Shown here one piece after another: positions 53,331 through 61,573 of a stretch of 64,000 nucleotides of DNA (positions are counted from its first letter, which is position 1; the number at the start of each line of letters is the position of its first letter). The stretch comes from Bugula neritina (taxonomy: Eukaryota > Animalia > Bryozoa). The notes under the pieces were generated by a model, which saw nothing but the letters and a program-made list of their open reading frames with translations, ran no database searches and was not told the origin of the DNA. Location of the stretch: contig OZ037766.1 of assembly GCA_964035545.1 (NCBI GenBank), positions 310,001 to 374,000 of the forward strand, given 5' to 3'. The position numbers and the translations under genes are program-made.

Positions 53331-54804
53331 ATTTTATATAGTATATATAGTGTATATATATAGTGTAGACAGTGTATATAGTATATATATAGTAGTATAG
53401 TAGTATATATTGTATACACTATATATAGTATATATAGTGTATGCTATAAAACAAATGTGAGGCTTTATAGAGTTTTCCCCCTGCATTTACTTATCAAGCT
53501 ACACTGTCTCAGGTCCCCCATTAAATTGGTAGCTGATGTGAAGAAAGGTAAATATTAGAGACTTATATATGATGGCTCGTTGTCACCTTTCTAAACATTT
53601 ATGTCCTACTGTACATTGTTAGCAGGGTATATAACTAGTTGATGTTAAAGACTCTAAAAGTTTCCAATTGGAAGTAAAGCAGTGCCTGGTTAGAGGACAA
53701 ATTGCTGTCAGTTTTGACTAAACCAATAATTGCAGGCTTTGACAAATCAGATTAAAATAAATATATTTTCGTTATTCATTTATCCTGTATTCATGAAATG
53801 TTTGCCTCTCTGTAATAGAGGACTGTCCTGGTTATGCACTATACTGTTTCTTTTACATAACAAAAAAAATTTAGCCTAAAAAGTTTAATGCATGGACATC
53901 CTGAACTATACGACCTTCAAAAGATTAGTTGATGATACAGAAACTTGTGTAGTGAGCTCAAAGAGTAGAATAATAAATGGTAATATTATATTGAAGGCTT
54001 TGTAAGTTGCAACACTCACTGCTTTATAGCACGTTACAACGCTCTACACATACCTGGAGAGTGTAGGTGATAGTGGATAATAATGAATAATAGTAGCTGT
54101 TTGAGTTATACATGACAACAGTAAGGACTAGTCTAAGGAATGTCAACGTACTTTACCTGATGGTATTAACAAATTACAGCGTTTTAGTTTTTGACTAAAT
54201 TCAAACTGTTTAAAACAGGTACTGTAGAGAATTAAACAAAGAGTTAACATGGCATTTCTACACATACCATTGGATCGTTACACTTTTATTTTTATCTAAA
54301 GAAGATATTTGTTGTTTTATTGGATAGTTTAGTTTCCTATGCAGCAGTCAGCTGCCTAATAATATATTTATTAGTTTTTACCATTTAGAAGATGCAATAA
54401 ATGTGAGAGAATGATTAAACCATCTCTTCTGAGTCTATACCAAAACAGTTTTTGTAACGAGACCTTGCTCAGCAAGTACAATATTCCCACTGCGAGTAAC
54501 TTTCAAAAGTTACGGATAAAAACTGAGCGATTCAATCCCTTAACTTCCAGTAGCATATGTTACTTATCTTCCTCTGATACTAAAAACTAAACAACCATGC
54601 AGCATATTTTTTGAAGTGTAATTTATTTATTTGATGCTATCAAAATCATAAAACACTCTTAAGCGTTATTTTAACTTATGTTAAGCAAATTCCAATGCAT
54701 TAGCAAAAAATATTTTGCATAGTTTCTTGGCTATATAAGATTTAATTTCCGGTAGGTACTGAATTGATAAAAAAATTTTTGAAACTTCAAAACTTATTAT
54801 ACTG

Positions 54805-57800
54805 CTACTGAAATCTGAACCTCCTGATATTGCTGACTTTGTGAGGATACTCTTGCTCCATGTCTCGGAATGCCTGATGCAAGAGGACAGCTTCATATAT
54901 CGGTTTAGTAAAGCCACGTGTTGTCGTGCCCAGCTCCATCCTACTGACAAACATTGCCAGTGGTTGCCATTTGTTGGAATTTCGCTTCTTGATGTGCACA
55001 ATTGAGCCACAATCACCGTCCTCCAGTGTGCTATTAACAAAGCATTCAGTTTGACTTCTAATAACAATGAATTAACAAACTTTCTATAAGTTACACTAGC
55101 TAAATAAAAATTCATTAAAGATGGCAAATAACAAGCTTTTTAAATACAGACTACACACTATCTTTGACGAAAAATATATTTTCATGGCAGTTAGCTTTTT
55201 TAAATTATACTAACTTACACCAGATTTAATTTTTCCACATTTACCTAAATTATTATTCAAAAATATTTTTTATTAAAAATTCCATTTCACACTATTATAA
55301 TTAAAACTTGGTGAATAAAGTGGACTCACCGATTTGGTAGTACAAAAGTCACTCTCTTTGCAAGTGTCTTATTGTCCTGCAGCAATACATAAGATTCTAA
55401 CATCTGTCCTTCAGCATCTCCCACACGAATTGTCCGCTCTTGGGCATGAAGGCTCTCTAACTTTGTAATAGTGCTAATTGTTTTTTCTCCTCCATGAACA
55501 GCATTTTCTTCAGCCTCCAGAGCTTTTTGAAGACGTGTGGCATCATCATAGTTCATTGGAATGAGAGCAAGGTCATTCATGAACATGTGGCAGCAGCTAG
55601 TATTCTGGTCTAAAGAGCAGTTGCGGATGGGGCAGTGAGGGACATGAAATGATGAGTCGAGGATGATTTGTCGGAAGCAAATCAACATTGGATGATTCAT
55701 GTCCACTGGCTGTGGCATCCTTTTCTGGTCTCTTGTCTCTCTTGTCTCTAAAGCAGCAGAATATCTTCGATTTGATATTGTGGACTCACACATCTTCCGA
55801 GCTCTAGCAATCTCACGAGTGTCTTCGTTTTCATTTTCAATGTCATACACCACTTCATTGGCTCCGGCATTTAGCTGACGATCTCGGAGATGATAGAATG
55901 CCATGACGCTTTGGTGATGATCACAGTCCCTGCTGTCTACCTGCTCAACCTCTCTGTTTTCAGCCATATTATGGTCTCTAGACAACCTCAAAGCTTCATT
56001 GGCAGATCTGGTTTGACTCTCACTCAACACAAAATGTGCTGGTACTACGGCAAAAACAGCTCCATGGAGATGACAGTTGCCAGGATATTTATCTCGCTCT
56101 TTAGCTAAGACAAGAAATTCACATTTTGCTTTTCTAATTTTTTGCCAATCTCCATTCGCACCCCTCAACTTTTCTACAACCAGGCTTGAAGTGACACGTC
56201 TAACTGGACTTTCTTTGTCTTCTACAATGACATTAAATTTCTGTGATAAAAATTTGTTTTCGATAGCCTTTATCTCCTTCTGGATAGACGAAACATTAGG
56301 CCCGATCACCAAGACATCCCTTGGGTTCTCAGTGGACCTTGTGATGACAGCATGCTTTACATCTCTTTCTTGACACAACCTGAAGAAAAAATATGAACGA
56401 AATTACTTTTAACAACATGTTAACAATACTGCATACTGAACATAACACAACCAATGGAAAAACTTTTGGAGAGATAAAGCTAATTAGAATAAGTGTTATA
56501 ATTTCCAGAATTATAATAGTAAAGGGAATTCGTCTATATTGCACTTATTTAACTTGCATTACTCAACACAGGACGAGTAGTGAAAAAAGAAGAGAATTTA
56601 TTTATCACAATAGTGTTATGTTTTCCAGATTTAGGGTTGATGTGCCACCAAGAGAGTCTATTTATCACTAGAGAAACTTCACCGAGTTAAGTTGAGTAGA
56701 TATCGTTATATTTTAATACAAGAATACATAATAAAATCTAATGTACAACAGTAATGATACGCACGTCTATTTAATTTACAGCACTATCCTCAACTGAGCT
56801 AGTAGCGCGAAGCTGCTACTATTACTCATAAAACAGCCTAGCTAATTGGCTAATACATTGTTCCGGGTCAATACGCAACCTTGCGTATTGTGTTGCTGGT
56901 AGCTCCACGGGCCACCACAATAGTTACACGAGTAAAACTGGTACAATATTAGATTAACACATAAAATAAACATCTATCTTTTCGTATTCAATATTAGGCT
57001 CTAACTAACTATCTAAGTAAAAACTGTCCGGAAGCATTCTGCTTCGCGGGGGGGGGGGGGGGGGGGGAGGGGGGGTAATCGCGTGCTTAGCCGTAATTGG
57101 CTCGTAAGCACGTGGCGTTTATGCTTCACTGGCCACTACATAAGGCAATTTTAACAAAATACAATTTTTTAAAAATAACGTCATTTAACCTCAAAAAGGA
57201 TTTAAATTAAAATATAGATGATATTGCTTATGGGCTGGCCACTTGACTCTATTTTTGACAAACACTTTTTGAAAGTCTTCTTGCTGGTAATGCCCATCAT
57301 TAAAATTGATAAACTATATTTTTCAAAAAAGTATTGCAAATAATCTCGGAAAGTAAAACTATTGTAAGAGAAGTAAATGACAGAATGACATATCATATTA
57401 TATGTAACATGTACCGTAACAATAACTTGAATTCATACCTGTGAAGTGAGTTGAGCAGCTCATGTACTGGTGGTTTTCTACTTCTTTCTGTGTGAGACAA
57501 AACTTCTTCTTCTCCACTTTCTTCTGAACTGTCATCACTACTAGTGTGCGGTGCTTTAGGTCGTTCTGTGTTAGTCTCTTTTGTCTCAGTTATGAGCTCT
57601 GTGTTAGTCCCAGCCTCTCTAGTCTTAGCAAGAAGCTCTGGATTGGTCCTGTTCGCTGTGACCATAGCAATGAACCTATTTTTGGTTCTAGTCTTTTGCC
57701 TCTTAACAGTGACAATACTATTGTTGGACTTTTTAACTATACCTGTAATTTTATAGCAACAAATGTAATGTTACAGGCAAGCTAAGATGCTTAGAGTTGT

Positions 57801-58379
57801 ATATCATACAGATTGCCACTTGTACTATTTTTAACTCAATGATTTCAATATTTTGTGTCCAACTATAGTTAATTTTTACTACTGTGTCAATGTTTCATTT
57901 TATTGTAGCGAGTTATTTGAGAGTTGAATTATATGTTAAATACCTAATTCATGTAGATCCTGCAACACCAATTCCCAAATCACATGCATTGCTGAAGGTG
58001 ATACCAGTGGAAAAGCTGCTAAACTTGCAGCTACTACACCTGCAGCAGCTGCACCTACAGCAGCTACACCTACAACTACTTCACCTACAACTACTGCACC
58101 TGCAACTACTAATGCAGCTGGAACTGATACACTTGCAGATGTTCCAGCTGTTTGTTTGTTTGTTTGTTTTATTTTGTCGCAGACGAAAGAAATACATACA
58201 GTTGAGGAAAATAAACAAATTGACAAGACCCATGGCACAATAGCACTGTAGCTAGTTGAGGCACAGACTAGCTGCAGTGCTATTGCAACTACGGAGAGGT
58301 TTTTCCTTTTGGCACTTGCTACTGCACAAGTGTATCCTGCCAGGCTAGCTTCTGCGGTATTTCCTGAAAGTTCAGCCAT
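54805..58379 (-). CDS. Membrane-anchored chymotrypsin-fold (PA clan) peptidase-like protein with a putative His-Asp-Cys triad, about 680 aa
   Basis: Exons 57944-58379 (hydrophobic segments), 57439-57742 (charged linker), 55330-56379 (FAVVPAHFVL; MNDLALIPM) and 54805-55057 (LEDGDCGSIV..PLAMFVS..YEAVLL). Intron phases 1, 2, 2; total 2043 nt open. Minus-strand AATAAA at about 54622-54627. The gene model is well supported; the fold call rests on motif recognition only. Confidence 0.7.
56614..56919 (-). mobile_element. Solo LTR (306 bp), related to the LTR at 60283-60588
   Basis: TG..CA ends and 4-bp TSD ATAG on both sides. The reverse complement starts TGTGGTGGCCCGTGGAGCTACCAGCA and ends TCAACCCTAAATCTGGAAAACATAACA, matching the 60283 LTR. 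Confidence 0.9.
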
Positions 58380-58493
58380 TCATTGTATCTTTAATTACAT
58401 TTCCTGTAATAATAACAAGTTTGTCAGGTATATCACATTAAAGATTAAAAATGATTGCGATTTTCTATCACCTGATGATTGACACAAAATATT

Positions 58494-58496
<3 letters not shown>

Positions 58497-58578
<82 letters not shown>
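58497..58578. repeat. (GA)n microsatellite
   Basis: Seen directly. Confidence 0.97.
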
Positions 58579-58589
<11 letters not shown>

Positions 58590-59396
58590 ACAGAAAGAGC
58601 AGAAGAAGAATTGACTAAACACAATACAATATAATACTCATACTTAAACTTACTTACTTACTTACTTACTTAAACTCCCAAACAGTGCAAGCAAAACATA
58701 TAAAACATAAACAGAGATATAATAACTGTATCACTATGACTTACCATAAAAAATTTTGCTGGCGTGGTAACGAATTGTAGGTATCAGTGTGGGTGCTATT
58801 TTATCAAGCATAGATTTATTTATATAGCTTCCAACTAAAGTGTCAAGAATTAGGTCAGCTGTAATGTATCTACGTTTGTACTGCACGTCCACAAAAGTTA
58901 ATTGTAGCAGTTTAAAGTGTTATCTAATCATTATCAGAATTGATTTATAGATTTATACTTTAATCACAGTGTAAATAAGGATGCGAATTATCTAAAAGAC
59001 AACTACTTGAAAAGTGCTCTAAAAATTTCAACCCCATGTATCCTTTGTAAATATGTAGCATTCAGAACAAATCATGTTTGTGCTATTTAGATGCTAGTCA
59101 CAAAATTGGTCCATATATTTGCTTTTCTATTTAAATTCATATTTACCTACATAAACAAGTTAACTATATTATTATACTGTTTACAAGCAATATTCTGTAT
59201 GATTACTAGCAGCTGGTGGAGAAATACAAGCATTAGGTAGTCCATATTTTACATACTTGATAAACAACTATATAATATAATATAATATAATATTATAGTG
59301 ACAAACAGTCTAGCATATAACATGTGCTTTATTTCTGATGTCACACTTGGCTCTTTTAATTTTAGGTTCAGGTTACAAACACAATTACCAATGTTT

Positions 59397-60619: not shown

Positions 60620-61573
60620 ATGGAGACTGAAAATGCTGGAACTCAACCACCGGCAGTAGAAGGTGAGCGTAAAGACAATGCTGTAGAGACAATGCCTGTT
60701 AACCATGTAGTAGAGGAGCGAAGGGTTCCGCGAGAACTAACTGAAGACCGCTACCGGTTAGAGGCGCCCACCTTCACGGGTGAAGAGGAGGTGGAACAAT
60801 TTATTCAAGAGTTTAGCGACGTAATGGACGTCGCCCAGTGGCCCCCTAGGGTGGCATTGCTGAAGCTTAGAATGGCATTGATGGACAAAGCCAAGCCTTA
60901 TGGGCTGGGCGTAGACATTGATAATATCTTTGCTTCTCTGCGGGCCCGCTTCGGCCTCTCTGCTACAGATGCCAGGGCCCGATTGCAGAGGTTGCGGCGT
61001 GATCCCCGCACTCCGCTGCGGGAGCACGCCGCCGCGGTCATGAAGCTGGCACAGATCACGTACAGCGACTTGCCCCCAGTCAACTGCGAGAGGTATACCC
61101 TCGACGCTTTCATAGCATCTGTCGACGATTTGGGTCTCCACCACCAGTTTCTAGCTAGGGGAGTCACCACCGTCGAAGATGCTCTGACTGAGGGGGAAGC
61201 TTACCTCCTAGCTAATCAAATGCATAAAAGTCGCGGGAGCTCCCGTCAAATGGAGGTAGACCGCGCGGACACGGCCGCGGGACAAGGGGAGGAAACCCCC
61301 GCCGCGGCTGCCGTGTCCCAGTTGGCGACGGCATCGAAAGTCACTCAACTGACAGACATGCTGGCCAAACTGATAGCAACACTGACACCCCAAACCCCAG
61401 TGAGTACCGCCACTGAGCCCGTGCGGCCACCGGCGCCGCCACCGGGAGAAACAGTCAGTTTTTGCTGGGAGTGCGGAAATCAAGGACATTTCCGCCGGTA
61501 CTGTCCCTTCCTAAATCAGGGGTTAAACTACCGCGGCCCGCAGATGTTCCCACCTCCTGCGGGCCGACGATGA
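60620..61573 (+). CDS. Gag, 317 aa
   Basis: APTFTGEEEVEQFIQEF capsid-like start and a CCHC knuckle CWECGNQGHFRRYC. Confidence 0.9.
   Translation: METENAGTQPPAVEGERKDNAVETMPVNHVVEERRVPRELTEDRYRLEAPTFTGEEEVEQFIQEFSDVMDVAQWPPRVALLKLRMALMDKAKPYGLGVDIDNIFASLRARFGLSATDARARLQRLRRDPRTPLREHAAAVMKLAQITYSDLPPVNCERYTLDAFIASVDDLGLHHQFLARGVTTVEDALTEGEAYLLANQMHKSRGSSRQMEVDRADTAAGQGEETPAAAAVSQLATASKVTQLTDMLAKLIATLTPQTPVSTATEPVRPPAPPPGETVSFCWECGNQGHFRRYCPFLNQGLNYRGPQMFPPPAGRR
61522..61566 (+). promoter_or_regulatory. Putative -1 ribosomal frameshift signal
   Basis: G_TTA_AAC in the gag frame (61522-61528), a 5-nt spacer, then a perfect 10-bp stem CGGCCCGCAG/CTGCGGGCCG with a 13-nt loop. Confidence 0.75.

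Follow-up and report, generated by a model that had tools for sequence, protein, structure and literature searches.

We analysed a 64,000-nucleotide stretch of Bugula neritina DNA (Bryozoa; GenBank assembly GCA_964035545.1, contig OZ037766.1, positions 310,001–374,000 of the forward strand; hereafter the window, to whose first letter all unlabelled positions refer), in which an initial annotation, made from the letters alone, had placed a spliced protease gene at 54805–58379. We consider it probable that this locus is a functional gene of an expanded family of intracellular PA-clan endopeptidases restricted to bryozoans. In our best reading, which leans on structural models of homologues, the family is cellular, may use Ser and Cys interchangeably as nucleophile, and would resemble rice NAL1 in fold and the viral 3C proteases in chemistry only. 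In this reading, the protease would be catalytically active and located in the cytosol.

Catalytic residues and nucleophile choice

The three catalytic codons lie on the minus strand exactly where the initial annotation had put them, within the motifs that it quoted: His is CAT at 56034–56036 (FAVVPAHFVL), Asp is GAC at 55572–55574 (NDLALIPM) and Cys is TGT at 55009–55011 (EDGDCGSIV). The parts of the gene that matter here are as follows (dN/dS, ratio of nonsynonymous to synonymous substitution rates).

54805–55030, minus strand: last coding exon (exon 4), second half of beta-barrel 2; based on translation, an RNA joint and homologue gene models
55330–56379, minus strand: main exon (exon 3), an open frame of 350 codons; based on RNA joints at both ends, homologue models and column conservation
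about 55587–55634, minus strand: Cys3-His cluster in the main exon, just before Asp
56380–57438, minus strand: intron 2; based on the RNA joint 56379/57439
57439–57742, minus strand: exon 2, encoding a disordered linker with many Ser, Asp and Glu residues; based on an RNA contig over 57440–57743 and a dN/dS of 0.21

Exons 2, 3 and 4 are phase-compatible, and the introns between them have canonical GT..AG ends. The main exon encodes, in order, an N-terminal alpha/beta subdomain, beta-barrel 1 with His, a long helical and disordered insert, the Cys3-His cluster, Asp and the first strands of barrel 2, with about 150 residues between His and Asp. The last exon carries the nucleophile motif G-D-C-G-S together with the conserved motifs Y-x-A-V-L-L and Y-P-H, and ends in a TAG stop codon (54805–54807). 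By the general mechanism of the PA clan, His would act as the general base and Asp would orient it; Cys of the G-D-C-G-S motif would attack the peptide bond to give a thioester acyl-enzyme, and the backbone NH groups of the same motif would form the oxyanion hole. Models of homologues suggest that the whole protein is composed of a variable disordered N-terminus, an acidic linker, a small alpha/beta subdomain and a protease domain in which a helical insert separates His from Asp.

All three catalytic regions were found to be strongly conserved in the family. All 48 aligned rows contain His and 47 of them Asp, and the Gly following the nucleophile was kept in 38 of 40. The cluster just ahead of Asp has the form C-x4-C-x7-C-x-H, its four residues being kept in 43–47 of 46–47 rows, and it probably binds zinc.

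At least 20 paralogous loci were detected in the genome (216 Mb, 321 contigs), sharing a common layout of a large and a small exon. The tally of G-D-C against G-D-S that the initial annotation had proposed could be made for 19 of these paralogues: 14 have Cys, always encoded by TGT or TGC, and five have Ser, always encoded by AGT or AGC, so that the two sets of codons are one first-position change apart. Watersipora has both Cys- and Ser-type members, and Bugula neritina homologues also have Cys. This distribution argues that the Cys is old and conserved; it is not private to the locus, and the suggestion that it might be a recent Ser-to-Cys variant did not hold.

The relationship of the two types was analyzed in a midpoint-rooted tree of the main exon, from which three loci (L023, L024 and L025) were left out because the stretches fetched for them hold no long main-exon match. 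A Ser clade formed by two loci and Watersipora P0019 (support 99/96) was separated from the mostly Cys-type rest, which includes Watersipora P0014. At least two changes of nucleophile state are required on this tree, while only one is demanded by the well-supported branches. In the best reading, Ser (AGY) and Cys (TGY) have replaced one another as nucleophile in the family through one substitution at the first codon position.

Comparison with a close relative (dS 0.16–0.26) gave a dN/dS of 0.45 for the main exon and 0.18 for the last exon; with the Bugula neritina co-orthologues (dS 0.7–1.1) the values were 0.26–0.28 and 0.12–0.16, respectively. At the level of the coding sequence the protease gene is shown to be under purifying selection, and the exon bearing the nucleophile is its most constrained part.

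Family range and predicted fold

Some of the paralogues stand in same-strand tandem arrays: four copies lie within 55 kb of contig 8 at 8.80–8.86 Mb (L010, L025, L006, L022), and two copies, both Ser-type, lie on contig 6 at 8.740–8.746 Mb (L024, L009). A HMMER search with the main exon among 1.84 billion representative proteins yielded 30 hits, including one spurious match to a repeat protein from a bacterium (P0029) that was set aside. The named hits were all 'hypothetical' or 'uncharacterized' proteins of Bugula neritina or Watersipora subatra. Word-indexed searches started from an alignment of five members and from the Ser-type protein P0019 returned bryozoan or unnamed sequences only and yielded no outgroup. 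On these sequence searches the family would be known only from bryozoans (Bugula, Watersipora).

At the N-terminus, some members have numerous ankyrin repeats or a coiled coil. Ankyrin repeats and the N-terminal exon of the homologue P0031 were also sought within the window, and none were found. The number of copies, their tandem arrangement and the fusions to ankyrin repeats invite the guess of a lineage-specific regulatory or defence role, as fusions and arrays of this kind are often met in such systems. The signalling or defence function suggested by the initial annotation would likewise be a guess.

The fold was studied on AlphaFold2 models of two homologues, both built with family alignments. 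The model of P0031 (residues 125–537, Cys-type; 64% identical to the window in the main exon and 76% in the last exon by tblastn) reached a predicted local distance difference test score (pLDDT) of 79 and a predicted template modelling score (pTM) of 0.76; that of Watersipora P0019 (residues 80–470, Ser-type) reached a pLDDT of 87.7 and a pTM of 0.86. Both form a double beta-barrel and were placed among the chymotrypsin-fold proteases by Foldseek and by VIA-align, as the initial annotation had expected. The models thus support a chymotrypsin (PA-clan) fold for the C-terminal 400 or so amino acids.

Rice NAL1 was the best structural match to both models (VIA-align Z 15.4). It aligned over 225 residues of the P0031 model and over 269–273 residues of the P0019 model, the latter including the subdomain before the protease domain, with residues 5–386 of the P0019 model matching NAL1 residues 99–455. 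In an exhaustive search of 48,161 chains, 110 reached Z >= 8 and NAL1 led the next family by about 3 Z units. Over the VIA-align comparisons, HtrA1 scored 13.6, DegS 13.1, FAM111A 12.4–13.2 and classical trypsins about 11–12. The top 50 rows of the exhaustive search were all PA-clan proteins, and no viral 3C protease was found among them.

A feature search with the protein language model ESM gave a similar picture. The ten best named hits of P0019 were all PA-clan families (score 0.93), and the neighbours in the ESM Atlas included Nal1_C clusters from plants, bacteria and molluscs as well as unnamed molluscan clusters; a search with the main exon alone was uninformative (scores of 0.78 or less). 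In the P0031 model, a strand leads into a short helix whose first residue is His, Asp is the first residue of a strand, and G-D-C-G sits in the segment linking two barrel 2 strands. By order and predicted secondary structure, His, Asp and the nucleophile are therefore modelled at the canonical places of the PA clan, and the offsets of the NAL1-aligned ranges fit the positions of His, Asp and Cys of the window gene.

Splicing, alternative explanations and neighbouring elements

The exon borders were examined with two sequencing runs. Run X1 is a public metatranscriptome-type library, taken as RNA by guess, from an organism about 90% identical to the window. Spliced contigs of this run carry the joints 56379/57439 and 55330/55030, with zero depth over both introns; the DNA run X2 covers both introns and shows neither joint. 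The spliced contigs and the conserved intron layout agree with the initial view of a host-encoded gene with introns. The following features concern the two ends of the gene.

54626–54631, minus strand: AATAAA, a possible polyadenylation signal 174 nt past the stop codon; pattern match
55031–55057, minus strand: 27 nt added to the last exon by the initial annotation, with an upstream AG acceptor; used by 0 RNA contigs
57663–57665, minus strand: in-frame ATG in exon 2; based on sequence
57944–58379, minus strand: exon 1 of the initial annotation (ATG and two hydrophobic stretches); coding status not supported

The proposed 55330/55057 junction was right in its donor side and in its frame, and the joint in the RNA contigs places the acceptor at 55030, so that the last exon begins 27 nt inside 55057. 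The Bugula neritina gene models of the closest homologues start their last exon at the same residue as 55030 and lack the nine residues encoded by 55031–55057. These nine codons are nevertheless conserved in the relative L032, and acceptor 55057 may occasionally be used as an alternative. Since both acceptors are in frame, the G-D-C-G-S motif is kept either way. Exon 2 has its homologues in the linkers of P0031 and L032. Counted from its in-frame ATG, exons 2–4 would give a product of 500 amino acids; the nearest relative has no Met corresponding to this ATG, and an additional coding exon therefore probably exists upstream of exon 2.

The initial annotation had filled this place with an exon starting at ATG 58379, which gave four phase-compatible exons and a membrane-anchored protease of 680 amino acids with two N-terminal transmembrane segments. 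We regard this complete model as very improbable, although its exons 2–4 were borne out by their GT..AG borders and RNA joints. The frame does stay open between 58379 and a GT donor at 57943, and its phase suits exon 2; moreover, ahead of exon 2 the relative's contig extends by another 421 nt, parts of which align near 58010–58071 and from 58279 on. However, the same X1 contig skips 58072–58278, and the first hydrophobic stretch is encoded within a dispersed repeat of about 120 bp located there (58149–58267; 40 copies scored among 152 candidates), which has 19-nt inverted arms at 58238–58256 and 58267–58285. A tract of low complexity (58010–58125) accounts for the second hydrophobic stretch. 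The contig joint 57743/58010 is non-canonical and does not agree with the proposed donor at 57944. DNA and protein searches upstream of the orthologous genes at L030, L031 and L032 revealed no counterpart of exon 1, and the annotated RefSeq/GenBank homologues have hydrophilic N-termini; the well-annotated ones have no signal peptide, in line with what had been noted for the window gene. Taken together, the repeat, the low-complexity tract, the skipping transcript and the missing homologue indicate that the membrane anchor is most likely an artefact, an open reading frame (ORF) running through repeats, and the length of 680 amino acids is consequently not established.

The reading of the locus as a functional cellular protease has to be weighed against several points that count against it. 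The window exons have no Pfam match at expectation values (E) up to 10, and seven homologues have none up to 1 in the protease region; neither the window exons nor the family profile has a sequence match in the PDB. When the family was compared by hhalign with a Trypsin_2 protein from this genome, the match lacked significance (probability 0.24%), although G-D-C-G was paired with G-S-S-G. The fold is taken from homologues that are 64–87% identical to the window in the main exon and 76–89% in the last exon, and the splice evidence stems from a related organism and from a run whose RNA status is a guess. Finally, two members, L025 (contig 8:8811144–8811329) and Bugula neritina P0042, have no G-D-C/S-G motif and retain the strand that follows it, so some copies may be non-catalytic. 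It should be mentioned that these two may be pseudoproteases or mis-spliced models. Among the individual Pfam models, Peptidase_C3, Trypsin_2 (PF13365) and Trypsin (PF00089) had no sequence match in the window exons or the seven homologues; Nal1_C (PF25819) had none by hmmscan, and a genome search with it was also empty, to which little weight can be given as its controls were silent too.

The two members without the nucleophile motif would fit a family of pseudoproteases or non-proteolytic scaffolds, in which the fold is kept and the Cys forms act by binding, without peptide cleavage. Haptoglobin and the inactive paralogues of the scabies mite are precedents for inactive PA-fold proteins, such proteins are present among the top 50 structural matches (rows 36, 37 and 45), and trypsin-type enzymes are usually severely impaired when their Ser is replaced by Cys through engineering. 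We nevertheless find this explanation unlikely: His, Asp and the glycines of G-x-[C/S]-G are nearly invariant over 40–48 rows, the nucleophile exon has the lowest dN/dS (0.12–0.18), and the nucleophile position is occupied in 19 of 19 typed paralogues by Cys or Ser, both of them competent nucleophiles. A viral origin, by which a bryozoan ancestor captured a picorna-like 3C protease that then gained introns and was amplified, the Ser forms being secondary, appears to us quite unlikely. Its main appeal is the Cys in G-x-C-G, as in the 3C enzymes; in addition, Peptidase_C3 and Peptidase_C30 clusters were found among the ESM feature hits, and Foldseek matched picorna-like polyproteins at E of 3e-5 to 1e-3, on a par with the value for NAL1. 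Against this, cellular serine proteases are clearly closer by Z, the NAL1 match extending over as many as 273 residues and taking in the N-terminal subdomain, and the template modelling scores are lower to the viral models (0.17–0.32) than to NAL1 (0.35–0.41, leaving aside two partial alignments). No other viral domain adjoins any copy, introns are conserved and some copies are fused to ankyrin repeats. Furthermore, the 3C enzymes, which belong to viral polyproteins, have a G-x-H pocket motif in the S1 strand past the nucleophile, but the corresponding strand reads A-M-F-V-S in the window gene and G-M-x-V-G in its paralogues. The deepest split of the tree under midpoint rooting also sets off a Ser clade with a Watersipora member. 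A functional cellular protease family with exchangeable nucleophiles thus remains our preferred explanation of the locus.

Several other elements were noted in and around the gene. The dispersed repeat at 58149–58267 is MITE-like (miniature inverted-repeat transposable element) in look and gives rise to the false 'transmembrane' ORF. A long (CT)n microsatellite is located at 58480–58590, just upstream of the ATG proposed in the initial annotation. Intron 2 contains an insertion (56491–57144) with a solo long terminal repeat (LTR) of about 310 bp at about 56610–56922; it belongs to a very abundant, young LTR retroelement whose genome copies are 98–99% identical and in many cases paired 7.14 kb apart. 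The insertion is missing from L032 and from some X2 DNA contigs, and may therefore be polymorphic. A poly-C tract of about 25 nt is also found in intron 2 (57050–57075). Upstream of the protease gene, an ORF resembling gag with a CCHC zinc knuckle (60620–61573, plus strand) and the stretch on to 64000, with a G+C content of 52–56%, point to a retroelement. An Rfam scan over 54500–58700 gave no match. Elsewhere in the genome, an intronless gene of 484 amino acids (L013:1312–2766, minus strand; contig 1, about 9.8816–9.8831 Mb) encodes a full Trypsin_2 domain with a His/Asp/G-S-S-G-G triad of the classical kind and, ahead of it, a second protease-like half; it looks like a TYSND1-type peroxisomal protease.

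Comparison with known proteases

To our knowledge, the curated cysteine-type members of the chymotrypsin fold are all viral, and NAL1-like proteases have been studied only in plants. We found no cellular chymotrypsin-fold cysteine protease in the literature searched, whose coverage was incomplete and is no proof of absence. We tentatively suggest, as a serious possibility, that the bryozoan family is the first cellular, non-viral chymotrypsin-fold family with Cys as the usual nucleophile and with active Ser and Cys paralogues one base apart, and that it represents NAL1-like proteases in animals. According to the 'two serines' argument reportedly made by Brenner, Ser and Cys proteases of the chymotrypsin fold can interconvert. 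If our suggestion is true, the family would provide a natural test of such interconversion within one fold, in a cellular setting and with both nucleophiles kept under purifying selection. Its matched natural Ser/Cys pairs would reveal what else must change alongside the nucleophile, and the evolution of catalytic type could be checked inside one family. Some 20 genes per bryozoan genome now called 'hypothetical' would also receive an identity, and the NAL1-like proteases would gain a possible animal branch.

Rice NAL1 (PDB 8PMG, 7Y77, 8PN2; Pfam Nal1_C PF25819, NAL1_N PF25608) consists, like the window family, of an N-terminal subdomain and a protease domain. It is an intracellular PA-fold protease with the triad H234/D291/S385 (PMC12012508). 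In the structural alignments it is 11–16% identical to the family models. Whereas the window gene has Cys and about 150 residues between His and Asp, NAL1 uses Ser and has a spacing of 57 residues. It forms a hexameric cage.

FAM111A and HtrA/DegS/Deg (S1-type, Trypsin_2) also contain double beta-barrel serine-protease domains, matching at Z 11.5–13.6 over 160–200 residues. These proteases have regulatory functions inside the cell or in the periplasm and carry accessory domains; they differ from the bryozoan family in their Ser nucleophile and in having PDZ or UBL domains in place of its subdomain.

The 3C-like character that the initial annotation had ascribed to the gene stands for its chemistry and not for its kinship. 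Picornain 3C and the calicivirus 3C-like proteases (MEROPS C3, C37) resemble the window gene in their chymotrypsin fold and in a triad made up of His, an acidic residue and Cys, with Cys in G-x-C-G; the nearest folds are those of the cellular serine proteases NAL1, FAM111A and HtrA/DegS. Foldseek matched norovirus and senecavirus 3C more weakly and partially (E about 1e-3 over 140–220 columns). The 3C proteases are domains of about 180 amino acids within viral polyproteins, whereas the bryozoan genes are cellular, spliced and multi-copy.

In enterovirus 2A and hepacivirus NS3, three Cys and one His coordinate a structural zinc inside the chymotrypsin fold. By description, this site can be likened to the Cys3-His cluster of the bryozoan family, but the latter is a local knuckle just before Asp, whereas the site of 2A and NS3 bridges distant loops.

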